Source: Mantamonas sphyraenae STR306 (taxonomy: Eukaryota; Protista; CRuMs). From it: a stretch of DNA of 64,000 nucleotides. Positions 15,972-53,275 of this stretch are shown piece by piece. The notes under the pieces were generated by a model, which was not told the DNA's origin, ran no database searches, and saw nothing but the letters and a program-made list of their open reading frames with translations. Location: positions 310,001 through 374,000 of the forward strand of contig JAPMXV010000031.1 in assembly GCA_026936335.1 (NCBI GenBank). The letters run 5' to 3'. Position 1 is the stretch's first letter, and each line of letters opens with the position of its first letter. Position numbers and translations under genes: made by a program.

Positions 15972-17930
15972 ATGGGAGCAAAGAAGGAGAGCAGTTCGGA
16001 TGAAATCCCATGGCTGCAGGCTGTGACCACGTACCTGGGCTATGCCATCCTCATTGGGTTTGGCCACATGCGTGACTTCTTTGGCAAGATCTTCAAGCCG
16101 TTCCAGTACCGCACGCCGGAGGTGAGTTGCCCCCGGTGGGCCCTTCTTTTGCCGATTGCGATTGCGCGCCGGGCTCACACAAGGCCGCCGCTGACACTCA
16201 TCCGTGCACCTGCAATGGACTGTACACACCCAATGCATTTTCTGGCATGTCCATCCAGGGTTACGCACCGCTGCTGATTGATTTCGAGCACTTTTACACC
16301 CGCAGGCTGTACCGAAAGATTGAGGACTGCTGGAATCGGCCGATTTGCTCAGTGCCCGGCGCCTACATCGACGTGATGGAGCGCACCAGCAAGGATTTCA
16401 ACAAGACAATCACGTGAGTGGGCACAGTGGGAGGGGTGGGCATGGTTGCAAGTGGAGACAGGGTGACAGTGTGTGGGGCTGACTCGATATGGGACCACGG
16501 AACACCGGGACGGCGTGCGGGAGGACAGGATGACCGGGCGCAAGGTGCATGCCCTGAACCTGGGCTCGTACAACTACCTGGGCTTCGCAGCCGGAGGCAA
16601 GAACAGATGCAACGACGCTTGCATCGACACACTGTACACGTACGGCGCCCAGACACTGTCTTGCCGTGCGGAAGTGGGTAGGTTTTCGTGGTGGGAAGGA
16701 ACAACGGCGTGGATCCGCGCCAAAAAGCGACCTCTGGCGAACGCCGGCGGGAGGGCTCCTTTGCAGCAGGAAGCAGACACTGACAGGAAAAAGCACACGT
16801 GTGGACGTGACACACAGGCACAAACAAGATGATTGTGGAAGCAGAGAAGCTGATTGCGCGGTTCATCGGCAAGGAGGACGCCATGATGTTCAGCGTGGGC
16901 TACGGAACCAACGCAACCAACATCCCGACGGTGGCTGGACCGGGCGACCTGATTCTCAGCGACACGCTGAACCATGCGTCGCTGGTGATTGGCTGCCGTG
17001 CTGCCGGTGCCAAGATCCGAGTGTTTAAGCACAACGGTACGTGGTGGTGGGGGCGCTGAAGGTTGCGAATCGCATCATAGGCACAGAGAGGCTGACACGC
17101 ATGATGCACATGGACACACATCGGCGGGAACAACACACACACACACACACACAGACATGAAGGACCTGGAGCGTCAGGTGCGTACGGCCATTGCGTATGG
17201 TCAGCCGCGCACTCGTCGTCCGTGGAAGCGCGTGATCATCTTTGTGGAGGGAATCTACTCGATGGAGGGCGAGATTCTGCCGCTGCCGGAGATTGTGCAG
17301 ATCAAGAAGAAGTACAAGTGCTACCTGTACATGGATGAGGCCCATTCCATTGGAGCACTGGGTGACACCGGACGTGGGGCGTGCCAGTACTGGGGCGTGG
17401 ACACCGCGGACGTGGACATCATGATGGGCACGTTTACAAAGTCGTTTGGCGCGTACGGTGGCTACATTGCATCGGACAAGGACTTTATGGACAAGCTGCG
17501 TTCCTCCTCGGTTGGCAACCTGTACGAGACGGCCATCAGTCCCGTGCTGGTGCAGCAGATTGTGACGTCGACCACCATCATCATTGGCGAAGACGGAACA
17601 AACGAGGGCCAGGAACGTCTCACCCAGCTCCACGACAACAGCAACTACTTCCGCGAATCGTTGCGGGAGATGGGTTTCAAGGTGCTGGGAGACAAGGACT
17701 CACCCATTGTGCCCCTGCTCCTGTTCCATGCCCCCAAGATCGGCTGCTTCTCACGTGAGGCTCTTGCCCGTGGACTGGCCGTGGTTGTGGTGGGCTTCCC
17801 CGCCACCCCGATCCTCCTCTCCCGTGCTCGCTTCTGCCTGTCTGCTTCCCACACTCGTGCCGACCTGGACATGGCTCTCGAGCACATCGACGAAATTGGC
17901 GACAAGATGATGCTCAAGTACGACGCTTGA
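15972..17930 (+). CDS. SPTLC2: Serine palmitoyltransferase subunit LCB2, multi-exon
   Basis: [51 protein letters not shown]-lysine motif [19 protein letters not shown]. Confidence 0.95.
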
Positions 17931-18253
17931 TTCCCTCTCGTCCCTGTTTTGCCCCGTGCGTGTCGATTGAGGTGGTCCTCGGCGCCGTGGTGTCTCCGTT
18001 GCTGTTTGGCAACTGCCCAAGGCCTTGTCGACGGCTCTTGTGGTGGGTTTGCGAACGGTGCAGGCGCCATGGTTGATCGATCGAACTTGAGTGTGTGGCT
18101 GCCCCCATCGGCAGTGCGAGTGTGTGTGTGTGCGTGTGTGTGTAGGACAGGAGACAAGAACACAAATGCATCACTTTCGCACAATTGCACAGCTTTAGGA
18201 CAGGCACACGTCCAATGCGCCCTTGTGACCAGCCAGAACAGCAGGGGCAAAGG

Positions 18254-20362
18254 ATGAACGAGACCTCCTCGTTGCTGGTCAAACAGGCCATTGTGGCCGA
18301 GGACATGCACTTTCAATATGGCAAGAACGCACCCAAGTTGCTGCGTGGTGTGAACATCTCCATTCCACGTGGCTCCATCTATGCCCTGCTGGGCGCTTCG
18401 GGCAGTGGCAAAACGACGCTGATGAAAACGGTGTTGGGAAGGTACACGCCCACCGAGGGCAAACTGGAGGTGCTGGGCAAGGCCCCGCATGCCAAGGACC
18501 ACGACGTGCCTGGACGCAAGGTGTCGTATGCACCACAGGAACTTGCTCTGTATGAGGATCTGAGCGTGCGTCAGAACGTGGACTTTTTCGCAGGGATTGC
18601 CCACATGCGACGCGCGGACGTGGAGGCTCGGTTCAAGGCCATGGTGGAGTTGTTGGAGCTGGAGGGGCTGGAAGACCGTGCTGTGCGACGATTGAGTGGA
18701 GGGCAGCAACGTAGGGTGTCGCTGATGTGCTGTATGGTCTACCCGCCTGAAATCCTGGTCGTCGATGAACCGACGGCGTCCCTGGATGTGCTGTTGTCAC
18801 ACAAAGTGTGGGACCACTTTCGACAGTTGGCAGACGCAGGCACGACCATCCTCATCACCACGCATGGGATCCACGAGGCCATCAAGGCCGACTGTGTGGG
18901 TCTTTTGCGCAACGGAGTCATCCAGGTGGAGGGCCATCCGCAGGCACTGCTGGAGCAGTTCAACACCAACAGCCTGGAAGACGTCTTTCTGCAGGTGTGC
19001 ATGCGTGGAGTGCATGTTCATGCCACAGCCACTGCGGGGTCGATCAACGACGATGACGACCAGGTAGCAGCAGCATCTGTCAAGACACAACGCAGACCCA
19101 TGGCAAAGGCATTGGAGGAGAGTGAAGACGCTGCGTCGCCGCCGGTGCTGTTGGAACAGCAGGTGGAGACCTACGAGTCCATGTTGGCAGCACGCACGAT
19201 TGCCAGTGTGGCATGGCGCAAGTTGGCTACCTTGTGGGAGATGAAGTTTACGCTGTTCTTTGTCATGCTGCTGCCTGCGGTGCAGATCATTCTCTTCTGC
19301 CTGGCAGTGGGTGGCGACCCGTTGGATCTGCCGTTTGGGGTTGTCAATGACGACGTCGGCTTGGGTTCCCTGCACTATGGCAATGCCATTGTCGATTCCA
19401 TCCAAAAGAATCACTCCAAGGTGCTGCACATGGTGTCGTGTGCCAACAGCAGCCAGGCGCAGACGCTGATTCGCCAGGGCCAGATGTGGGCGGCGTTGCA
19501 CATTCCACAAAACTTTACACAGGGTGTGGTGCGCATAGGCTTGAATCTGAACGAGTTGAAAGATGCCAAGGTGGTGGATATGGTCACCCTGGGCATGTAT
19601 CGCGACAACAGCAACGAACAGATCAGCTTGAGCATCGACAAGGCGTTGCAAAAAGTGGCCAAGGATGTGCAGGGCTCCATTGCAGGGCAAAGTGGTGTGC
19701 AATTGCCAGCATCGGTGATTCGTTCCCACAAGCCTGTGTATGGGCCTGAGGGCGATGCCTCGTACCGGGATTTCATGGCACCCAGCATGATCGCCCTGCT
19801 CAGCGCGGTGTACCCGGTGTTTCTCTCCTCCATCTCTCTGTTGAGGGAGCGCCTGGATGGCACGTTGGACAGGCTGTATGCGTGTGGAGTGACCAAGTTC
19901 CAGCAGATCATGGGCCACCTGGCTGCGTTTGTGGTTGTGATCAGCATCCAGACGGCGCTGATGCTCCTGAGTGCCTTTGTTCTGTTTGACATCCCCTTGG
20001 CAGGGAGCATTGTGTGGGTGGTTGTGTTCTGTCTGGTGTTGGGCATCAGCGGCGTCTCGTTGGGCCTGTCCATCTCGGCCGCAGTGTCCTCCGAGCACAG
20101 TGCCCTCCAGCTGGGCTTCTCCTTCTTCTTCCCGTTTATGCTCCTGGGAGGCATCATTTGGCCCTTCCAGGCGTTGTCGGGCGTGTTGAAGTATCTGTCG
20201 TACGCTGTGCCGACACACTATGGGGGACAAGCGTTGCGCGACATCTGTCTGCGTGGCTGGGGCATGGAAGAGCCGCAGGTGTGGATTGCTGGCTTGGTGA
20301 CTGTGGGTGTGCTGTCTGTGTTCACAGCCAGTGCAGTGTGGATCTTGAAGGACAGGGATTGA
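18254..20362 (+). CDS. ABC half-transporter, NBD-TMD order with large extracellular loop (ABCH-like)
   Basis: Walker A GASGSGKT, signature LSGGQQRR, Walker B ILVVDEPT, H-loop ITTH. ABC-2 type TMD (ERLDGTLDRLYACGV, LGGIIWP, RGWG). Confidence 0.88.
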   Translation: MNETSSLLVKQAIVAEDMHFQYGKNAPKLLRGVNISIPRGSIYALLGASGSGKTTLMKTVLGRYTPTEGKLEVLGKAPHAKDHDVPGRKVSYAPQELALYEDLSVRQNVDFFAGIAHMRRADVEARFKAMVELLELEGLEDRAVRRLSGGQQRRVSLMCCMVYPPEILVVDEPTASLDVLLSHKVWDHFRQLADAGTTILITTHGIHEAIKADCVGLLRNGVIQVEGHPQALLEQFNTNSLEDVFLQVCMRGVHVHATATAGSINDDDDQVAAASVKTQRRPMAKALEESEDAASPPVLLEQQVETYESMLAARTIASVAWRKLATLWEMKFTLFFVMLLPAVQIILFCLAVGGDPLDLPFGVVNDDVGLGSLHYGNAIVDSIQKNHSKVLHMVSCANSSQAQTLIRQGQMWAALHIPQNFTQGVVRIGLNLNELKDAKVVDMVTLGMYRDNSNEQISLSIDKALQKVAKDVQGSIAGQSGVQLPASVIRSHKPVYGPEGDASYRDFMAPSMIALLSAVYPVFLSSISLLRERLDGTLDRLYACGVTKFQQIMGHLAAFVVVISIQTALMLLSAFVLFDIPLAGSIVWVVVFCLVLGISGVSLGLSISAAVSSEHSALQLGFSFFFPFMLLGGIIWPFQALSGVLKYLSYAVPTHYGGQALRDICLRGWGMEEPQVWIAGLVTVGVLSVFTASAVWILKDRD

Positions 20363-20403
20363 GGTGCAGAGTGAGGGTGCGAATGTGGTGCCAAACCAAA
20401 ACA

Positions 20404-21289
20404 ATGGAAACCGCGTTGGGACAAGCCGCTGCAGCAGGGGAGGTGCACGCTGTGTTGGAGGTGATGGAGAAGGAAGGGGATGCGTTGGATGAGAAGACGG
20501 TGGACATGGCGTTGATGGTTGCGGCGGGGAGAGGCCACTTGGAGGTGGTGCACTGCTTGCTGGACAGAGGGGCAGACGTGTGTGGTCTCCGTGTGGGCAA
20601 TCCATCGCCTTGTGGAGATGCAGCTTCCAATGGCCACACAGAGGTGGTCAAGGCGTTGTTGGAGCGTGGGGCTCGGGTGGACCAGCCGAGCTTCCACCTG
20701 CAGCTGACGCCGCTGATGATGGCCGCGCGCAAGGGACACAAGGACACAGTGGTGGCGTTGTTGGAGGCTGGAGCAAGTGTGAACCTTGCGGATGATTCGG
20801 GGATGACTGCATTGATGTTTGGGGCGTGGTTGGGGGAGGCGGAGATTGTGTCTGTGTTGCTGGAGCATGGCGCAGACACAGAGGCACGCGATGCGAAGCA
20901 TGAGACAGCGTTGATCAAAGCGGCGTGGGACGACAACTGGGAGGCAGCCGAGGCTTTGTTGAGCGCGGGTGCCAATGTGGACGCGCGGAACGGGAGCGCA
21001 TGGACCGCGTTGACGGTGGCAGCACGCAGTGGGTACATGGACACAGCAAGGGTGCTGTTGGAACATGGGGCAAAGGTGGACACCAGTGCAAGCCTGGGCA
21101 TGACGCCGTTGATGCATGCGGTGGTGAAGGAGCACGTGGAGATGACCAAGCTGTTGTTGGGGCATGGTGCAGATGTGCACTGGCGATGTCACACTGGAGG
21201 GACGGTGTTGGCAATGGGTGCGTCAAGCAGCAGTGCAGAGGTGGTGGAGGTGCTGCTGGAACACGGGGCAGAGGTGGATCGGATACCCA
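20404..21289 (+). pseudogene. Ankyrin-repeat gene, 5' part, interrupted by the Fanzor-like insertion
   Basis: About 9 ankyrin repeats (TPLMMAARKGHKDTVVALLEAGA etc.). The frame runs into the insertion after ...EVDRIP and stops at 21328-21330. It may still be expressed as a truncated protein. Confidence 0.85.
21278..21289 (+). repeat. Left target-site duplication ATCGGATACCCA
   Basis: Identical 12-mer at 27629-27640. Confidence 0.92.
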
Positions 21290-21380
21290 GGCCTTTGCGA
21301 CCGACCGTGAACACTGCTGTGCTTTGTTGAAAAACAATAAAAAACCATCCTTTCGATGGTAGTCGGTCGCAAATCCCTGC
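21290..21380 (-). ncRNA. Candidate Fanzor omega-RNA scaffold (downstream end of element)
   Basis: Perfect 12-bp stem TTTGCGACCGAC (21294-21305)/GTCGGTCGCAAA (21362-21373) encloses small hairpins ACCATC/GATGGT and TTGTT/AACAA. It lies 3' of the nuclease ORF and abuts the flank, the canonical omega-RNA position. Confidence 0.55.
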
Positions 21381-21446
21381 CGTCAGCCGCCCGTCGCCCC
21401 GCCCGCCTTTATTCTGTGTTGTTTTGTGCGATTGTTCGATTCACTC

Positions 21447-24400
21447 TTACTTCTTGCGCAGTTGCGCCCGTTGCTTGCGCCACCTCCTCGATGACAGCTT
21501 TGTGTGAGTCTTCCTGTCCACGCCCGAGATGGCCAGCACCAACAGGGTGGCGATGGTCACTGCGGCGTCCGTGTCCTTGTGCTGCGCCCAGCGTTCGCAG
21601 CGGGCGCAGTCCCACCATCTCCGGCTACAACCGCGTCTTGTGTATGACTTGGGACTCAGGGTCACCTGGTGTCCACACTCGCGGCACAGAGCAGAGGTGT
21701 ACGCCTCGCGTGTGACCACGACCGTGTGGGTTCGGCTCAGGTGCCTCTTCACATCAGCCAGAGGCACACGCGCGCTGAAGCGTCCGTTGCCAAAGGCAAG
21801 CAGGGAGCGCTGCTGCGACAGCCTGTCGATGTCCGAGATGGAGGCCGAGATGCCAGCAAGGTACCTGTTGCGGAGCTTGCGGTGTTCGTGATGATGCGCA
21901 TCCACGAGGTTCCGGTGCGGCTCTCGCTGTGCAAACTCTTCCCGCTTTGCTTGGTTCAGTTCTTGCCATGTCGGGGTAGAAGAAGCAGATGATGATGGTG
22001 ATGATGATGAGGAGGAGGATGATGATCGTGCGTTGGATCGTAGCGTACGTCGGGAGGACGCCGCTGCTGCTGATGACTCTCTGCATCTTCTGACTGCTTC
22101 CGTGGCAGCCTGGGACAGTACGTTCTGCTTCTTCCTGAGCTGACTGGTCCGCAGCATGTGTCTGTAAGATGGTGTTGGCAATGAAAAGTAGATACCTGCG
22201 TCCACGTGCAGAACATTGTCGCGATCGAGTGTCGCTGACATCTTGTTGTGGTGAAAGACAGCGACGCAGCTGGTGCAGTCAACGTTGGGGTCCATCCCGA
22301 TTACAGGTATACCAGCAGGCGTCCACAAATCGTTCTGCCCTAGTGTACGGGCCACCTGTTTGTCTGACTCAAGCAAGATTCCAGTGCGCTTGCCAGCAGA
22401 AGTTTGCGATGGCTTGCACTCCGCCTCTAGGTGCTGCATGACGTCTGTAAGGCTGCTCTCGTCGACACCAGACTCTTCAAACCACTGCTCCAGCTTGGGC
22501 ATGGCCGCTCTGCCGTACGCTTGATAAAAGAGGCTCGCCATATGCATGACGTGGAACCACGATAGATCCCGCACTTTACCCTTCGCGTCGAACCCAACAC
22601 GGACACATGCGACACGCAGTGCCTCGTCGACGTCTGATGCTGCCACGCAGCCCTGAGCACCATTCAGCTTGCGACGGGCTCCAACAGCCAGGCTATGCGG
22701 GGCGTAGACAGTTTGATAGATCGATCGGCCGTCGTTGCCACCGAGGGTGATCCCCTGCCCTCGAGTCTCCTGCCCTGTGTCTGAGTTCCAGAGCCCCGGT
22801 AGAACGAGCATGGTGACTGCGTTTACAAGGTCACCCCGGTGGGCTGCCCATCCAGCTTCCGTTCTCAACATGCCGACATGTGTTCGCCCTTTGATCCTCT
22901 CCAGTGCACGCTGTGAACCTGGGCACAGAACAGCAGCGTGGTCCACAATAAGCTGGTTGAGCTGGCGAGCGAGCACGTTTGACTTTGCTCGCTCATCCCA
23001 GGGCAACGTCTCGATGATCGCGGTGGCTGCTGCTGCTGCTGCTGCTGCTGCTTCGCCTCCCCTCGTACTCAAGTGCTTCAGAAAGTTGTATGCGACCCGA
23101 AACAGCTTAAACTTTAGATCGTACCCCGATACCGAAACCGTACAGCGTGCAGTCGCGCGTGGGCGAGGTACAAGCTGGACAGCGTGGCCACATTGCTCAG
23201 CCTCCAATTTGAGCAGACAGATGTAGGACGCGACACGGGCCTGGTTCTTCTCGTCCTCCTTTGCCTTTGAGAGCAAAGGCGAGCCAGCCACGACCTTGCT
23301 CACCTTGTCCTTCAGCGGCTGCAGCTGCGTCCTCCAGTCCATCTGCTGCTGCTGCGCAACCACAAGCGCCTCTTCATGGTCCTGGTCTTGGTCCTCATCT
23401 CGATCCTGCTCGTGATCTTGGTCTGCTTCCGGTTCTCCATCGTCGTCGACCTCGTCCACCTCCTCGACCTCCTCTGCTTTCACCCTCTTCTTCCATGCTG
23501 CGAGTGACATCCCCGACACGTATGCGCATGCCACCTCTGTCAGCTTCCGCGGGAGCTCCGGCACAGCATCGCACACCATTCTCTTCACCGATGACGTCCA
23601 GTGTCTGGTCGCAAGGTTCCACATGGTCCTCATCTGACGTGCAGCTGACCCCTCAGCCAGCAGATTCTCGAGTTGCTGACGCTGCTCCTCAAGCTCCAGG
23701 CCGTCGTAGTATGGACTCGCAATATGGGCGCACAACACTCCGTACAAGCGCTCCCGTGCTTTAACAAAGCTGCTGTGAGTGTCGACCAGGACTGCTTCCA
23801 ATTCGTGGCGTTGGCTCTCAGACATCCTGCTGTCCGCTGCGTCCTGAATACTCCCACGTGCCACGGTCGTGGCTGTTCCCGCCAGTCCCATCACTCGTTC
23901 CACGCCTCCGTGTCCATGGCCGTCATGCATCCCGTACACACCAGACAACGCCTGTTCCTCGGTCGGGCGGCGGTCGTTTAGCAGCGCTGCAACCTTCCGT
24001 CCAAGCTTGTAGAACGATTCACGCTCTGCTGTGCGCGCCTCGTCAATCTCATCCTCATTGTCCTCTTTGCTTGACTCCTGTACGTAGCAGACATCCTTGC
24101 CACAGAGCAGTTTGGCCAAACGGCCCTTCAAGTAGGTGCCCTTGGCCAACATCGAGTCACACAGTGTCTCCACCTCGTCGCTGTTGCTGCATGAATCAAG
24201 TCTTCCCGCCTCGACATCCGCGAGCAGCTCCTCTCTCTTCTGTTCCACTGCCTGCTCGAACTGCTGCATGTTGTCGTACCTTTTTGCCTTCTTCTTTGCC
24301 TTTTCAATCTCCTCCTGCAGCTCAGTCTGCCGTTCAATCGCGTTGTCGAGCGAGGCACGCTCCTGCGTCCCCAGCTGAAGCCGTCCTTGCTCCGCAAACG

Positions 24401-27374
24401 CATCCACGATGTCCGACATCCTACCATCGTCGCTGTCGACACGAATGGTGTATGTCCTGGCGTTCACCACACCGTCCCTGAGCGCCATTGCCGGGCCCGG
24501 GGCAGCTGCAGGTTCCGTTTGGTTTGGTTTGTGCACCCGCGTGTTCCTCGCCAGCTCCGTCAAATCGTCCACGGAAGACGCCAAAGAGTAATCCGCACAC
24601 AGTTGGCGCATGACATACTTGAGCTGCGTACTGCTCCTTGTTCGCATGGCCGGGCGAACGGATGCCAACGCGAGACGCAGACACGAATCGTCGCTCATTG
24701 CCGGACGCAGCTCGCCGGCGCTGTCGGCGCTGTCGGCGCTGGATGTGGCATATGTGTCCTCACGTGCGCTGGGCATTGCATGTGCCTCTTGCATGTCCTC
24801 TGTCTGCATCTCATCCGACTCCACTTCGTTTTCCAAGTCCTCTTCTTCCGCCCCGGCTCTTCCGTCGGCCTCCCAGGCCTTTACAAACGCCTCTTCATCC
24901 TGGACATCCTGGACACCATTCTCAAGGTCCTCTGTCTCCATACCCGACTCCACTGCGTCGTCAGCGACGTGGTCCACCTCCCCGGTTTGATCTTCGTCAT
25001 CTGCGCTGGCGTCGGCCTTCCAGACCCTGTATGCCTTGGCGAACGCATCCTCGTCCATGGTGACGTCGTTTCCCCGTTCGTCATCGATTTGTACCCCCAG
25101 CGTCTCGGCCAGCAAGGTCACCTGTTCCACCATGCCGCTCCTGGCATCCTTGATTTCGACATCCGACGCGCGTCCACGAGCAGGTGCTGTCGGTTCAAGC
25201 GTGGACGCCTGCACGTTGGAATGAATGATTTGGTCCACAGCGTTCTGTACACACCACTTCTGTTGTTGTTCGGCAACGCGCTGTACACTGTCGCAGATGC
25301 GTTCGCGATGGAAGTGCAGAAGGCCAACGGGAGCACGCTGTACAATGGCGCCCGCACAGGTTCCACCCAAAAGCGCATACGTGAAGAAGCGTGCGTTTGT
25401 GCTGTCGTTGCCCACGTGCACAGCTCTCAAATCGACTGTGTTGCCAGCAAGGTACTCGTTCCAGTTGTCCTGCCGGCACCAGCCGCACCGGACGCCTCTC
25501 GCCATGAGTGCACAAGCGTCTGCACCCACCACGAGTGCATCTGCGGCGTGCTGAATGGCGCACAGGTTTGCATCGTCTGTTGCCCACACGCAGAGGCGCT
25601 GGTCCACCCAAACGTTCCCGTCGTCGCTGATTGAAACGCGGTCGTTGTCCGCACTCTTCAGGGTCTCGTACAGCCCACGCAGCCGGTGCTTTTTGGTGTA
25701 CGTGTGTACGTGCGCGTCCAGCTCCTGCCGGAATGATGCAGGGATCGCTTGGATGGCCGCCATCACCAAATCCATCCCCGCCTCCTCGACGCTGCCTTCC
25801 TTGGCGCTGCCATCCTCCACGCCGCCGAGTATGAAGTGGTCGAACCCAGCAACTTCGATGTCGTCGGCAAAGCGCTGGACAAGCGGACGCACGGACCGGA
25901 CAAGTTTAGCCAGGGTGGCCGTTTCTGCGAACGCGGCTGAGACAAAACTCCACGTCCTCACCGGACGGCCCTCAGGTGGTGTGGTACATTCCAGTGGGAC
26001 GTACGTGGTCATACCCTCGGGTGACATGCGAGCAAGCGCCTCTACGATGTCATCGCCACTGGAGTTCACGTCCAGCTGCTGATCGAGAGCATCGCCGGCG
26101 TTGGTCAGCACAACGGCGTTGTAGTCCCCCAATGTTGCTGGTTTCGGTGCAGGAAGAGGCACGCGAGCACCAGCTTGACCGTAAGGCTTGGCACGCTTCG
26201 CCGTTGATGCTTCGCTGGCGACAGAGGCGTTGGCGTGTCCCGGCTTGACGTGAAACGAAGGACAGGAATCGCTTGTTCGGCCTATCATACGAGCGCTGTA
26301 TGTTCGGCCAAAGTGCTTCCCCACGTACCTGGCCACCTCTTTGGCAGAGAGCCTCGCCGCAGCAAGTGTGCACTCACACGCGTCGCCCTTGCGAGCTACT
26401 TCAATGCACAGCGCATACTCAGACATTGCGTAGACGCGGCCATTGTGAATGAGAGATGCCTTCAGCAAGTGGCTGATGCTGAGCCAGCACAGGTCATCGT
26501 TTCGCCGCGAGCGTGAGCGGCGTGTTTGCTTGAGAAAAGGCCAAACTTGGGTCGTGAACCGCTTGCGTGCTTCCTTGGCGCGTCTCAGCAACGTGGGGCT
26601 GGCTTGGCATTTTGTGGTACTGATGTGATGCAGAAACTGCGTCTGCTCGGGGTACTGCACCCTCGCCTGCGCCCACCGTTTGGGCTGCTTTTTCTGCGTG
26701 CTTTCGCCAGTTTTGAGCGCCGTGTACATCTGCCGTGCTTGATCTGTTCGAATGTCGTCGAGAAAGGTCGTGCGTACAAAGCGGTGTTTGCTTTGCCTGA
26801 TGGGCCTTCTAGGTTTGACGGTGTGCCACGAGGACAAAACCCAATCTGACTCCGGCTCGACCTCGATATCGGTATCCATGGGGTCTTTCGTGACCGTGTC
26901 TTTGCCTTTGCTGTCTGCCTCAGTTTGCTGACGAGTGTGTGTGTGTGTGTGTGTCGTGAGGGGTCCCACACGTGTGTGAGCCGCAGCAAACGGAATTGAG
27001 TGAGGCGGAATTCAACCTACTCGCCCATTGCCACTTCTGCTCGAGGAGGAGGAGGCTGAAGACGTTGAACGAGATGCACGGCCTCGACGGCCTCGGGATG
27101 CGCTGCGGGATGCACGGGATGCGCGACCTCCCCTGGAATGTGTCTCTTGGTTCTGTACACGTTGCCGTTTCTGCTGTCGCCACTCCAACGTTTGCCTGCT
27201 CCTTCGTTCACGTCTATTTTCCCGAGCCTCCACGCTACGCGGTGAATGAGATACCTCATCCCGTGTGTCTTCATCTTCTCGACCCCTCTTGCCGCCCTCA
27301 TCACACAGCAGCAAGAGAACCAACATGAAGAAGAACCAACGGAAGCGCATGTTGTTTTGGCGACCACGGCGCAT
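21447..27374 (-). CDS. Giant Fanzor/TnpB-family RNA-guided nuclease-like protein (~1,944 aa if spliced)
   Basis: C-terminal RuvC-I VIGMDPN (Asp codon 22290-22292), LAFGNG, RuvC-II VVVTREAYTS (Glu 21705-21707), Zn finger CREC...CARC, RuvC-III HKDTDAAVTI (Asp 21567-21569). A putative 93-bp phase-0 intron 27020-26928 links to a 118-codon exon 1. Confidence 0.85.
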
Positions 27375-27405
27375 AGTCGAGCAGTCACTCGTGCATTCTC
27401 ATTCC

Positions 27406-27614
27406 AACGTGTAGGGTGGCGTTGACAACATTCATTTCAGTGTCCCAGGGTCCTCGCGGCTCTTGCGAGGAATCGTTCTGCAAACACATCGAGCTTGTTC
27501 AACATGGTGCACTTACGCATGATCGAACCGTAAGAACCCGCAGAAGAGCGAAATCATGTCTTGGTGAACATTCTATGTGTTTCTGGGAGTTGTTCTCAAG
27601 GGTGGAGCCACGTT
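27406..27614 (+). ncRNA. Candidate ~210-nt structured RNA at the upstream end of the element
   Basis: Eight mutually compatible helices, e.g. 27406-11/27609-14, 27443-48/27583-88, 27451-57/27465-71, 27482-89/27575-82, 27496-501/27565-70, 27502-08/27553-59, 27512-17/27529-34. G-U extensions favour the + strand. Confidence 0.55.
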
Positions 27615-27628
27615 CACGCTCAATTGCA

Positions 27629-27640
27629 ATCGGATACCCA
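27629..27640 (+). repeat. Right target-site duplication ATCGGATACCCA
   Basis: Identical 12-mer at 21278-21289. Confidence 0.92.
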
Positions 27641-27915
27641 CCAGTCCCTTCGGGAAGGAGGAGATGACCCCACTGATGAAGGCAGCGTGGGCAGGCAACT
27701 ACGACGTTGCCAGGGTGTTGCTGAAGTGGGGAGCAGATGTCCATGCGGTGGACCACTCGGGCCGGAACGCCCTGACGACGACTGCACAGCGGAGGAACCA
27801 GACTGTGCAGCCATCGACTGTGGTGGCATTGTTGTTGGAGCACGGTGCTGATGCAAACACTGCGGTGGATGCCACGCACAGGGAGCTGGTGGAAAAGGTT
27901 ATGGGAGGTGAGTGA
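27629..27915 (+). pseudogene. Ankyrin-repeat gene, 3' part
   Basis: RIPTSPFGKEEMTPLMKAAWAGNYDVARVLLKWGADVHAVDHSGRNAL... continues the frame of the 5' part. Confidence 0.85.
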
Positions 27916-28693
27916 TGAGTTCGTCGTCTGCACGAGAATCAACCATTTCGTGGAAGGCCCCTGTTCCCACACATCGGAGGCACTCCATTGCCCAAATGGC
28001 CCGTTGTTTACTGTTACCCCATCATGTCTACGTCGTGTGTGCGTTGCTGCCCTTCAATGCAACATGGCCACCTCGCATGGGCTGGGGCAAGAAAATCCCA
28101 GAAAAATCCCCCCAACTTCGGCCTTCGGCTACCCCCCATCCATCCCCCCTCTTTTTCTTCTCTCTCTTTCGCGTTCTCTCATCGACATTGCGACTACATA
28201 CACACCGTCTATTCAACATGATCTCTGCCACGATTGCTGTGCGTTGCTAAACGCAGCCTAGGCACACGACTACATCCCGGGAGAGACCAATTTGATTTTT
28301 GAGATTTCTCATTTCGGGCGCAACAACCAGCACAGAGAGCTGAAGGAAAGAAAAGAAAAAAGCACACAAGCCAACCAAGCAACCGTGAAGGAATACCTTC
28401 ACACCACAACACACACCGTAAGTGGTCCACATCACCATGCATGCAATTGTACACGCGCGGGGGGTGTTGGTTCACGCGCGCAACCGGCCATTGGTGGCAA
28501 TTTGCGTTTCTGAGAAATTCCTCAGCACAGTTGGCGCCAGGCTGGTGGCCCGCGACGGGGGAAGCAAATCAAACATTCTCCGTCGCGGCGTCCGCTAGCA
28601 AGAAGCAACCGTTAGGCCACGCCCCCCACCCCCTTCTTCGTGTGTACATACCCATCAGCAGTCGCAACGACGATCACGAAAGATATAGCCACG

Positions 28694-30886
28694 ATGGCGT
28701 GTGGACTCACGCAGACCCCTGTGCGGGTATCGTTCCCCCAGCGCATGAAGCGAGCCTCTTCCATGTCCTTTGTGGACATGGCGGAGAAGATTGAACAGAT
28801 AGCTGGGCCTCTGGCGGGCGATGGAGGCCTGCGCGAAGCACGCACCGGCTCGGACGATTTGGAGCTGGTTGCCTCGGCGGAAGGCAGGAAGAGGCGATTC
28901 TCGGTAATGCTGGAACTGCCGCGCAGCAACACGGAGCTGCAGCTCAGCGACACTGTGCACCACTCATCCGAGAGTGCCGGGTCGCACCCATCCACCGAGG
29001 GCGCATCGTCGGCGAATCAGGTGCCGATCTGCGTCCACAGTGAGGCGGAAAACGAGCTGCAGATGTCTCGCGAACACCGCACCCCCGTTCACTCGGCCAA
29101 ACGCCGCCGCCAACACTATCATATCCCCGGCAGCGACCACGTCGGCCTGGCTGCCACGCGCGCGTACTATGCACGTGGCGTCTCTGCGTCCTCGACCACC
29201 TCCTCTGGTGGCGTGGCACGCGTGGCCGGCGCGGGGTCCATGGACGAAGAGCGGATTTCAGCGAAACTGGGCCTTCCGAACTCTGCCTCTGTGGCCTCGT
29301 CCCTGATGAGGTCGATCAGCCAGAGCAGCACAAGCACCACAGGCACAACAAGCACCACAAGCAGCAAGCACAGCAGCAGCAGCATCAGTGTGACAACAGT
29401 GACCAACATGACCAGCATGGACGAGCACACCTTTGCCTACACCAACACAAGGAATACCACGTGCAGCAGCAGCACACTGTCCACACGCACACGCAGCAGC
29501 AGCGCAAGCAGTACGACCACCCATGTCGACGTGCACCACCAGCTGCACCTCAAGATGGACGTGCAGATCGAGCAACGTGTGCGCACGCCGCTCCTTGCAG
29601 CAGGCAAGGACTTTAGCGCAAGCAGCCTCGTGTGCGAGAGCTCCGAGGATGCATCGTCGGACGGCGACGACGCGCTGGACATCGACACGGGCGCACACAT
29701 GCAGCGTGCGGCGCGTGTGGAGATGCAGCGGGATGCGTACGACGACGAGCTGTCCACGCACCGTGGGCTCAAGGCGATGATGAGCAGCGACGAGGAGCCG
29801 TTCACCGACGCGTACACAGACAACTACACAGACCAGTACCTCGAGGATGACGACGGTGCGTCCACGACCACGGTCAGCACACACGCCACGGCGTACAGTG
29901 TGATGTCCCTTGTGGGCAACCAGCACGCAAACGTGTCGCCGCTGACCCTGGGCACTGCTCTGCCCTTGTGTGACTTTCAGCACGCCATTGTGTCGGGTAT
30001 GGTGGCCGACCAGTTCAAGGAACTGCAAACGCTGACCAAGAACAAGGAGTTCTTTGTCAAGTTTGGCGGCTTTGCCTACTCGCACAAGCGGGACGAGAAC
30101 AAGGAGCAGAACAGGCACGGCATCCCCTGCTACGATGACAACCGCGTGGTGCTGCACGAGCGCACGGGTCTCACCGGCGTGCACAACGACTACATCAACG
30201 CCTCGTACATCGCCTCGGTTGGACAGGAGCGACGCTACATTGCCACGCAGGCGCCTCTGGAGTCGACCATGTTCAAGTTCTGGGAGATGGTGGTGCAGGA
30301 GCGCACCCACCTCATTGTGTGCCTGGCCGACACCAACGACAGCAGCCAGGCAGACCAGTACTGGCCCACGCACAAGGGCGACTCGCTGGAGTACGGCGAC
30401 CGCATTCGTGTCACACTCACCCTGGAGGAGTCACTGGAGGGCAACATCACGCACCGTGTGCACACGGTTGCCAAGCTCGACCCGGAGCACGGCTTCCGGG
30501 TCGTCACGCGCACCAAGGTCCACCAGCTGCACTACCACGGCTGGGAGGACATGACGGCGCCCTCCAACATTCAGAGCATCTTCCACCTCATGCAGCACAT
30601 CGAAAACATCGAACAGGACCTTGCCGACGAACGCCGCGCCCTGGGACCCATTGTGGTTCACTGCAGCGCTGGCGTGGGTCGTGCAGGCACCTTTATTGCT
30701 GCACACATTGCCTGTGAGCATGTTGTGGCCGTCGAGGAGCAGCAGGGGGTCAAGCTCACAGAGTTTAACCTCGCCCAGTTGGTTTATGAGCTGCGCCAAC
30801 AGCGCCCGCTCATGGTCTACAAGCCTGCTCAGTACGAAGCCCTGCACCACATCGTGCACATGTTTGTCACCGGCTCCTGCTGCTGA
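28694..30886 (+). CDS. Classical non-receptor protein tyrosine phosphatase with long disordered N-terminus
   Basis: DYINASYI, RYIATQAPL, FWEMV, QYWP, P-loop VHCSAGVGRAGTFI, LRQQRP. Confidence 0.92.
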   Translation: MACGLTQTPVRVSFPQRMKRASSMSFVDMAEKIEQIAGPLAGDGGLREARTGSDDLELVASAEGRKRRFSVMLELPRSNTELQLSDTVHHSSESAGSHPSTEGASSANQVPICVHSEAENELQMSREHRTPVHSAKRRRQHYHIPGSDHVGLAATRAYYARGVSASSTTSSGGVARVAGAGSMDEERISAKLGLPNSASVASSLMRSISQSSTSTTGTTSTTSSKHSSSSISVTTVTNMTSMDEHTFAYTNTRNTTCSSSTLSTRTRSSSASSTTTHVDVHHQLHLKMDVQIEQRVRTPLLAAGKDFSASSLVCESSEDASSDGDDALDIDTGAHMQRAARVEMQRDAYDDELSTHRGLKAMMSSDEEPFTDAYTDNYTDQYLEDDDGASTTTVSTHATAYSVMSLVGNQHANVSPLTLGTALPLCDFQHAIVSGMVADQFKELQTLTKNKEFFVKFGGFAYSHKRDENKEQNRHGIPCYDDNRVVLHERTGLTGVHNDYINASYIASVGQERRYIATQAPLESTMFKFWEMVVQERTHLIVCLADTNDSSQADQYWPTHKGDSLEYGDRIRVTLTLEESLEGNITHRVHTVAKLDPEHGFRVVTRTKVHQLHYHGWEDMTAPSNIQSIFHLMQHIENIEQDLADERRALGPIVVHCSAGVGRAGTFIAAHIACEHVVAVEEQQGVKLTEFNLAQLVYELRQQRPLMVYKPAQYEALHHIVHMFVTGSCC

Positions 30887-51511: not shown

Positions 51512-51605
51512 TGGTGATGATGGGAATGGCTGGGTGGTGTGTGCAGTGAGTGGAACAGGCGCAGACGCGCGCGTGCACACACACTCCACCACCACCCCAG
51601 GCACA

Positions 51606-53275
51606 ATGGACCTCAAGGGCAATGAATATGAACGCAAACGGAGGGAGAACATGCTGGCGAACGAAAAGATGTTGCAGGAGCTGGAGTTGGCACAGATGAG
51701 TGAGGGCCTGTTTGAAACGGGAGGCGGAGGCGGAGGTGGTGGCAAACGCAAGGGCCGTGCACGTGCCAGTGGGACCAAAAGGCAGCGTGTGGCAGACACG
51801 GTGCCCACAAGGCGCTCGGCACGGCTGTCGAAACAGGAGGAGGACAAAAAGGAGGAACTGGTGTCGCTTCCGGACGATTTCGACGACCGCAAGGTGAGCT
51901 TGGCCAAGGCGAAGCGGCAGGTGCCTGCAGAACGCATGCTGGGACCAGTGGAGATGGCCGATGTGGTGTGGAACCATCGACGTGGGACGGCACATGCGTT
52001 TGTTCAAGACGTGGTGCTGCCTCTGGGCGGAGCCTGGAGTGCAACGACGGACACGCCCCTGGCTGATCAGGCCGGCTACAAACTTGTGCCCAGTGTCAAG
52101 GCGGTGGACAAGCGGCCCTTTAGCATTGCGTTCCATCCGTCGACCGACCGTCTCATTGCCATTGCAGGCGACAAAACCGGCCAGTTGGGCTTCTGGTTGC
52201 ACAGTCCCGACGGGTTCTCGGGATTCAGCAGCTCGTCGTCGTCGTCGTCCTCCTCCTCCGTGCAAAAGTCGCCGGCGAAGAAAGGCAAGAAAGAGGAGGA
52301 AGAGGAGGCCAAAGGAAAGCAGGGAGAAGAGATCCAAGACAAGAAAGGGGAGGGGGAGAGGACGAGTTGGACGAGGATGGGGTTTCGGACGACGAAAACG
52401 ATGTGGAGCGGACAATTCTCAAGTTGCAGCCTCACACACGAGTGATCAGCGCCATCCAATGCTCGCCTTTGGACGGCAACCGAGTGTTTACATGTGGATA
52501 CGACGGCGTGGTGCGTTACACGGACATGGAGAAGGAGGTGTTTGTGCAGGTGTACAGCACGCCAGACGATTGGCGTGCGGTGTGTCTCACCTCGCTTGAG
52601 ATGGTGGGTGGGTCGCCACACACAATGATGTGCTCGACCAACCAGGGTGCAGTGGCCCTGTTGGACGACCGAGAGGACGGAAGCAAGGTGAAATGGCACG
52701 ATTTGCACGATCGCAAGATTGGCCAGCTGGCGTGCCATCCCACACACGAGCAACTGATGCTCACGTCGTCTCTGGACACAACCATTTGTCTGTGGGATCG
52801 TCGCAAGTTGAACAAGGAGCCGCTGCTGACGCTGGATGGGCAGAGCAAGGCATCGAATGGGATTGCGTTTTCTCCACTCACAGGCACGCGCATCACCTCT
52901 GTGTGTTATGACGACTATGTGCGAGTGTGGGACTTTGATCCAGGTGCGTCCAAGGTGGGCAAGGCACGGCAACTGAAACACAACAACAACACAGGCCGCT
53001 GGGTCACGCCGTTCAAGATTGGGTTTGATCTCAAGGACGAAACACGTATTTTGGTGGGAAACATGCGCCGTGCAGTGGATATCTTTGTGTTGGAGGAATA
53101 CTCGGGCAAGGTGGACACCAAGAAGGGACCTGTGGTCAAGGAGATGTTGCAGCTGGCGGACGAGGAGGAGTTTACAGCCATCCCGTCGCTCAACGCCACC
53201 CATCCGTCGCTGGATGCCATTGCATGTGCCACCGCAAGTGGACGCACGTACATGTGGCTTGGTAAAGGTTTCTGA
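51606..53275 (+). CDS. WDR76: WDR76/Cmr1-like WD40 protein with apparent frameshift near 52350
   Basis: NEYERKRRENM...N, PTRRSARL, IAFHPS...AGDKTGQLG, HNNNTGRWVTPF, VGNMRRAVDI. The two halves lie in different frames. Confidence 0.85.

Follow-up and report, generated by a model that had tools for sequence, protein, structure and literature searches.

A giant Fanzor-like gene in a 64,000-nucleotide stretch of the Mantamonas sphyraenae STR306 genome (the window; positions 310,001 to 374,000 of contig JAPMXV010000031.1, assembly GCA_026936335.1) lies in an element that interrupts an ankyrin-repeat gene, and most copies of this element combine an exact right end with a left terminal inverted repeat (TIR) whose outer part is replaced, in register and with its length preserved, by bases of the target. 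The reading that we prefer, with a probability of roughly 0.5, is that a transposase inserts the element, after which the Fanzor cuts the empty sister chromatid or allele, and repair copies the element in right end first while keeping part of the cut tail. The encoded protein would then shape the junction. Tentatively, such junctions could be taken as a direct genomic record of eukaryotic Fanzor homing, with cutting built into the life cycle in that each insertion reprograms the guide.

Across the assembly (25.06 Mb in 78 contigs; PMC10492846) we found nine full copies of 6.3-6.7 kb, six of which are 96.5-98% identical and three divergent; individual loci carry labels beginning with C. Read in gene orientation, on the minus strand of the window, all 13 right ends are exact and terminate with CTG, and the target has the form TG^NN^CA, in which NN is variable and not TA. 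From NN to the inner left TIR the distance is 10 nt in 8/11 complete elements; in the other three it is 9 or 11 nt. The outer part of this interval is target sequence (10, 5, 10, 9, 4, 7, 5, 8, 3, 8 and 4 nt in the 11 elements) and the inner part stays TIR-like, the duplication always being on the outer side. These duplicated bases sum to 73, against a mean of 8 and a maximum of 22 in 20,000 permutations. Four of the 11 junctions fit a plain 2-bp insertion, and seven go beyond what such an insertion gives from any observed donor end, with the window copy as the fully overwritten extreme. Its 12 bp comprise 10 duplicated bases, the last of which is a T present in all 18 left ends, and a TG that is target on one side and element terminus on the other. 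What the original prediction described as a perfect 12-bp target site duplication (TSD) is thus real as a repeat and as an odd junction, but it is not a uniform TSD, as other copies duplicate 3-10 nt. The same variation in length led us to reject a fixed TSD of 9 or 12 bp. A 6-bp TSD (TGNNCA) was likewise discarded: immediately ahead of NN at the right junction, every Fanzor copy has TG, including C25 and C75, whose target had CG, and the family of C51 has AG. The family form of the left end was found on 0/9 Fanzor copies versus 5/8 other left ends (p = 0.009, the copies being non-independent). Variants that start with CAG recur in different copies, which suggests that overwritten left ends may be inherited. 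An internally deleted element of ~790 bp (C74, ~51551-52340) has a variant left TIR, the right end of the window family and an 8-nt duplication.

Could such junctions arise during transposition itself? If the transposase joined only the right end at TG^NN, host repair could make the left junction by copying a few target bases and annealing to the left end via TG..CA(G) similarity, with the Fanzor as a passenger or acting separately. One-ended transposition of this kind accounts for a right end that is exact, a left end that varies and copies that are truncated. The targets do resemble the family's left end, with C in 10/13, A in 6/13 and G in 6/13; left ends are also altered in C11 and C46, which carry the transposase, and piggyBac and Mos1 provide known cases of single-ended events (PMC3952818). 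However, a microhomology of 2-4 bases would hardly hold the register in 8/11 elements, the window target lacks the C, and no donor flank has been carried over. Moreover, the events in the literature are aberrant side products and not the majority, and selection on the Fanzor open reading frame (ORF) is left unaccounted for, so that we regard this explanation as doubtful, if worth keeping in view.

The window contains exactly two occurrences of ATCGGATACCCA, at 21278-21289 and at 27629-27640, and the repeat is not extendable; both the exact repeat and its two occurrences are as originally claimed. Deleting the insert and one repeat copy gives, again as claimed, an uninterrupted ankyrin frame, EVDRIP-TSPFGKEEMTPLMKAA, of 392 aa, in a host gene that is matched by Pfam Ank. 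In Logan contigs of run X4, the loose end before 27629 is ankyrin upstream sequence with one single-nucleotide polymorphism, which is the empty allele that had been proposed as a check, and contigs of runs X1 and X2 likewise continue before 27629. The filled window junction was not among the Logan matches listed. Because the empty site occurs in these contigs, the insertion is real and either heterozygous or polymorphic. The claim that it is recent is supported.

Such empty alleles in a diploid genome would also provide the substrate for a later alteration, in which the left ends of plain 2-bp insertions were altered either through assembly errors or through gene conversion with the empty allele that did not involve the Fanzor. 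The young copies are mosaic (neighbour incompatibility 0.345 versus 0.565), which would suit such conversion and also fits repair between copies. Nevertheless, the alteration is strictly one-sided in 7/11 elements, and the junctions of C55, C10 and C53 recur in independent Logan contigs, which makes an origin by later conversion or artefact very unlikely.

The element had been described as lacking TIRs and as fitting no known carrier, and neither description holds. Its ends form a degenerate 25-bp TIR beginning with CAG that a repeat finder overlooked, with 16/25 positions identical in the window copy and 17/25 with the family left end, and with 13/17 identical in the inner 17-mer (p about 2e-5). 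The same left end heads elements of ~8.8 kb, in four of which an IS630-family DD34E transposase of 346 aa is intact (NF033545 over cut-off), so that autonomous relatives with a common end do exist; the first ~100 bp of the left end are 90% common with these transposase-encoding elements, and in the divergent Fanzor copy C45, 490 bp of their transposase region survive, including a broken start of the transposase. In a mini element of ~840 bp (C51), a deletion derivative, the right end of the transposase family can be read as a 25-nt TIR, again in register; its junctions, TG-CA/CAG and CAG/CA-CA, amount to a plain 2-bp duplication. By coordinates, 8.7-8.9 kb separate this right end from the left end at C11, C43, C59 and C41, and 11.8 kb at C46; with the right TIR of the Fanzor elements it has only the inner core in common. 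Judging by the common left end, the remnant in C45 and the right end in C51, the carrier is an IS630/Tc1-type transposon, of which the window element is a non-autonomous member, presumably mobilised in trans by the partner DD34E transposase. A DD34E partner and TIRs are as in the IS630-Tc1-mariner superfamily, but the TA target duplication is not found, NN being never TA in the in-register junctions read; a 2-bp stagger fits C51, C10 and the TIR register, and is elsewhere masked by overwriting. Because its target is TG^NN^CA and not TA, the family is an atypical variant, derived from and working like that superfamily. Several giant frames with TNB matches lie, by their coordinates, 5-7 kb downstream of related transposases; genome-wide there are 39 TNB matches, about 30 of them in frames of 1,500-2,090 aa.

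As originally claimed, the element holds an intact, Fanzor-like RuvC gene of more than 5.4 kb. The ORF of 1,810 aa starts at the ATG at 26879, is open in 8/9 copies and has a TNB zinc finger, with PF07282 over cut-off in the genome search. The C-terminal D..E..C4 zinc finger..D motif of Fanzor/TnpB is present, and D1530, E1725, the C4 finger from C1732 and D1771 are invariant in four divergent copies and three Mantamonas plastica proteins. The RuvC-II glutamate is located six residues ahead of the finger (E-AYTSAL-C), a position given as a Fanzor/pro-Fanzor signature in PMC13565253. With dN/dS (nonsynonymous over synonymous substitution rates) at 0.24-0.39 among young copies and 0.21-0.30 against divergent copies, the giant Fanzor is, on these comparisons, under purifying selection. 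Homologues of the window protein were not found in the 5.8-billion set, PDB and ESM Atlas, and a profile search returned only three clusters of giant Fanzor-like M. plastica proteins from a transcriptome. The searches gave no domain assignment for the N-terminal 1,500 aa, although the motifs DxNL, GxD and YALLGG are conserved there and resemble, by eye, a degenerate FEN1/EXO1. Compared with the FEN1/EXO1 reference motifs, most acidic residues are missing in the window protein, and all tool tests for such a domain were negative, leaving it unconfirmed; both structure predictions were unusable (predicted local distance difference test, pLDDT, 37), and the fold searches gave noise. That the RuvC gene is alone in the element stands insofar as no transposase is encoded in cis; upstream, however, lies a 120-aa ORF, of which similar versions occur in the C74 mini element and throughout the four subfamilies. 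This is probably exon 1, which would bring the protein to about 1,944 aa if spliced on, and the same predicted intron arrangement is present in copy C29. The upstream ORF opens with a hydrophobic stretch resembling a signal peptide and has a tail rich in Arg and Ser, which is unexpected for a nuclear nuclease.

Given a large conserved N-terminus with no assigned function and no transposase in cis, the Fanzor might itself, perhaps through that N-terminus, carry out the primary integration, by cutting or marking the target via the TG motif and a short seed and having the element copied in without a transposase. The asymmetric target consensus and the truncated copies without a left TIR would agree with this. 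However, new targets match no other copy's flank beyond ~7 nt, full copies retain TIRs and a common left end, the C51 element uses TG^NN^CA with a plain junction despite its different right end, and domain and motif searches of the element found no integrase, recombinase or reverse transcriptase (RT) motifs. The earlier suggestion that the encoded protein drives the insertion therefore keeps some force for the shaping of the junction, which would be the Fanzor's part, and is unlikely for insertion by the Fanzor alone. We also rejected the idea that guides direct the choice of new sites, as no target has a long match to another copy's flank.

Beyond the stop codon, the right end adopts a putative omegaRNA-like fold. 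The last 92 nt are predicted to form a TIR-closed stem with three hairpins (z = -3.2; 0/200 shuffles as stable), with one compensatory pair among nine copies, and Rfam returned no match for the region. In Fanzor1 omegaRNAs the TIR forms part of the scaffold (PMC10711439), and the adjoining flank acts as guide (PMC10711439, PMC10432273); by analogy, the right flank at 21278..21287 would be the start of the guide region. The omegaRNA-like region is kept in 5'-truncated mini copies. Two short copies with a right end and no left TIR, C75 (~148 nt) and C30b (42 nt), duplicate the target at the point of truncation: in C75 the duplication is 8 nt, with homeology upstream in register, and in C30b it is ~16 nt with one mismatch. 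Duplications were read in these two and not assigned for a third short copy, C62. As a separate observation, the right end of the transposase elements (C51 locus, minus strand) folds into a TIR-closed multi-hairpin structure at -83 kcal/mol, a value that has no shuffle control; the ~8.8-kb elements may have their own guide RNA and an undetected nuclease.

Short copies of this kind also bring to mind RNA-templated insertion, in which a host enzyme, or that of a long interspersed nuclear element (LINE), would reverse transcribe the mRNA or omegaRNA of the element at a staggered break. Variable TSDs, exact 3' ends and 5' truncation are as expected from such a process, and the ~148-149-nt length of two short copies places their ends close to where the omegaRNA probably starts. 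Yet a poly(A) tail is absent, the element is without RT, and full copies keep the promoter region, the TIR and the predicted intron; nor would a fixed 10-nt register be expected. The idea is already weak for full copies, and we give it hardly any credence.

How, then, would homing after transposition proceed? The common ends indicate that the DD34E transposase of the ~8.8-kb elements would act in trans, inserting the element at TG^NN^CA with a 2-bp duplication. If the element works as known Fanzors do, its right end and the new flank would give rise to an omegaRNA whose guide matches the empty site, and the Fanzor would make its cut ~14-17 nt rightward of the insertion point, in an empty sister chromatid or allele or in a vacated site. 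Homology-directed repair would, judging from the anatomy of the junctions, copy the element in starting at its right end; on the left, the broken end, bearing target bases as a 3' tail, would anneal in register via upstream flank homology, and with the tail incompletely trimmed, target bases would replace the outer left TIR at constant length. Aborted copying would leave 5'-truncated copies with the same kind of duplication. The junction anatomy is observed, and the break, the right-end-first copying and the in-register annealing are what we infer from it. On this model, homology of the upstream flank to the filled copy would explain the fixed register, and plain and scarred junctions would occur side by side (4 versus 7 of 11) if only the repaired chromatid is scarred. 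Fanzor1 cuts the non-target strand after base 14-17 (PMC10432273), and the closeness to this distance of the ~16-nt duplication in C30b, the longest seen and located on the only copy too short for making the omegaRNA, supports a Fanzor break. Selection on the ORF, with its triad intact and 8/9 copies open despite the lack of a cis transposase, further supports homing, as do the omegaRNA-like fold at the right end, the mosaic young copies and the family-form left end being seen on none of the nine Fanzor copies. In the strongest form of this model, the 1,500-aa N-terminus may steer the repair.

Several points weigh against homing. Cleavage, omegaRNA and homing of this element are all inferences, and homing has been demonstrated experimentally only for prokaryotic TnpB/IscB (PMC13565253). 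A target-adjacent motif as short as TG would also occur at the element's own right junction, so that self-cutting would somehow have to be avoided. The ~16-nt duplication is seen in one copy. The transposase elements C11 and C46 have altered left ends too, with no TNB match nearby. At the ankyrin locus the homologous allele is still empty, with a mismatch 12 nt into the flank, and the mosaicism of the young copies may instead stem from an assembly-polishing artefact.

Among known systems, the Fanzor1 elements borne by Mariner/Tc1 (SPu-1, PUl-4, PGv-1; PMC3627910, PMC10432273) come close: they too are TIR elements, their non-autonomous copies have the Fanzor as sole gene, relatives have the transposase-side end in common and differ on the Fanzor side, and there are an omegaRNA-like fold at the right TIR and short derivatives. 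The window element differs in having no TA target, TIRs that are only 17/25 alike and a target-overwritten left end, and its protein of about 1,800-1,950 aa is about three times the size of most Fz1 (600-700 aa; PMC11423790). Long or variable Fanzor TSDs have precedents, left unexplained in both cases, in CRe-1/2/3 (7-19 bp) and MCi-2 (11-12 bp; PMC3627910). The former, Helitron2-borne Fanzor1 elements of Chlamydomonas, likewise have intact 3' ends, 5' truncation and TSDs directly after the target motif; these variable TSDs were reported without explanation (PMC3627910), and a Fanzor role was tentatively suggested (10.1101/2022.12.15.520654). However, their carrier is a Helitron and their target TTTT, whereas the window family has a DDE carrier and full copies with length-preserving overwriting. 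MCi-2, an unclassified Fanzor1 element of Mucor, has a fixed motif in its TSDs, fuzzy 5' ends, a length of ~6 kb and no obvious TIR; it contains a partial Crypton gene and its carrier is unassigned, whereas TIRs and a DD34E partner were found for the window family. Restorative homing by TnpB of IS605/IS607 follows the logic proposed here (right-flank guide, empty-site cut, repair from the filled copy), but concerns prokaryotes only and scarless carriers, and the passages of PMC13565253 consulted describe no junction scars. The giant Fanzor-like proteins of M. plastica (EukProt EP00003; P0001-P0004) have the RuvC triad, the zinc finger and a size of up to 1,836 aa in common with the window protein, at about 23% identity over the C-terminus and with no N-terminal similarity detected.

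Other classes were rejected: non-TIR MuDR, as the duplication is 3-10 nt, not a constant 9-11 bp, and the partner is IS630-like; a Helitron2-Fanzor of the CRe type, given the target TG^NN^CA, the terminal TIRs and the DDE partner (RepHel was not searched for); a non-LTR (long terminal repeat) retroelement, as RT and a poly(A) or repeat tail were not found in the element; and an IS607-type Fanzor2, as a TIR and duplications are present and a recombinase is not. The papers searched yielded no account of a TIR overwritten on one side with its length preserved, of an IS630/Tc1 carrier of a Fanzor with a target other than TA, or of any Fanzor from Mantamonas.

These junctions bear on the reason for which cut-and-paste transposons of eukaryotes retain Fanzors. 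They provide a countable signature, made up of a right end that is exact, a left end overwritten in register and truncated copies with longer tails, which can be searched for in other genomes; homing, if true, would account for the long or variable TSDs of CRe-1/2/3 and MCi-2 noted in 2013. TSD length can misclassify Fanzor elements of this type. Also unusual in themselves are the use of a target other than TA by an IS630/Tc1 family and the size, ~1,800-1,950 aa, of a Fanzor that is under purifying selection. The features of the locus are collected in Table 1.

Table 1. Features of the Fanzor-like element and its insertion site (window coordinates).
Feature	Position	Strand	Basis
Host ankyrin-repeat gene, 5' part, interrupted	20389..21287	+	Pfam Ank; 392-aa pre-insertion frame; empty allele
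Right flank, original target bases (NN = GG + 8 nt on minus strand)	21278..21287	-	Identical to empty allele; duplicated at 27629-27638
Right TIR, 25 bp, ends CTG	21288..21312	-	Exact in 13/13 right ends
Putative omegaRNA-like region, a TIR-containing stem of 13 bp with a GAAA hairpin and two further small hairpins (core at 21288-21379)	21288..21435	-	Fold and shuffles
RuvC and TNB (D1530, E1725, C4 from C1732, D1771)	21447..22300	-	Invariance; PF07282
Giant Fanzor-like ORF, 1,810 aa	21447..26879	-	dN/dS 0.21-0.39 across copies
Conserved N-terminal segment, unconfirmed FEN1/EXO1 likeness	25269..26138	-	By-eye motifs; tool tests negative
Predicted intron, GT..CA tract..CAG, phase 0	26928..27020	-	Same in C29
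Probable exon 1 (upstream ORF), hydrophobic leader followed by an Arg/Ser-rich stretch	27012..27374	-	Four subfamilies
Inner left TIR, never overwritten	27612..27628	-	~100 bp at 90% with transposase elements
Outer left TIR position, family form CAGTTGGT, here target bases in register	27629..27636	-	Copy comparison
Target TG and 2-bp core duplication NN (GG)	27637..27640	-	Copy comparison
Host ankyrin-repeat gene, 3' part	27641..27915	+	Pfam Ank; restored frame

The genome contains further Fanzor loci. A second giant-Fanzor family, with frames of 1,700-1,980 aa and present at the C51 locus and 12 other places, has a similar CCTG end that is followed by TA in the sole copy read; because of this TA, the non-TA target may be specific to the window family. 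The C51 mini element (C51 ~522434-522458) lies 16-18 nt downstream of a right end of this second family (CCTG/TA), approximately where the second giant Fanzor would cut its target, and this is one case only. At C51:275260-275823 a weak transposase N-terminal match is located in an open 2,074-aa frame just upstream of a giant TNB frame, and from these coordinates a transposase-Fanzor fusion is possible. Four strong TNB matches in frames of 630-850 aa (C44:209417, C52:436203, C58:24124 and C6:54752) represent conventional Fanzors.

The host genes neighbouring the element in the window are ordinary and are, by reading, a serine palmitoyltransferase-like aminotransferase (16989-17930), an ABC transporter (18185-20362) and a protein tyrosine phosphatase (28640-30886). 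The TIR pattern search also returned a ~2.7-kb tandem array, C27:178754-223070 and C28:79985-89637, which is unrelated to the element.

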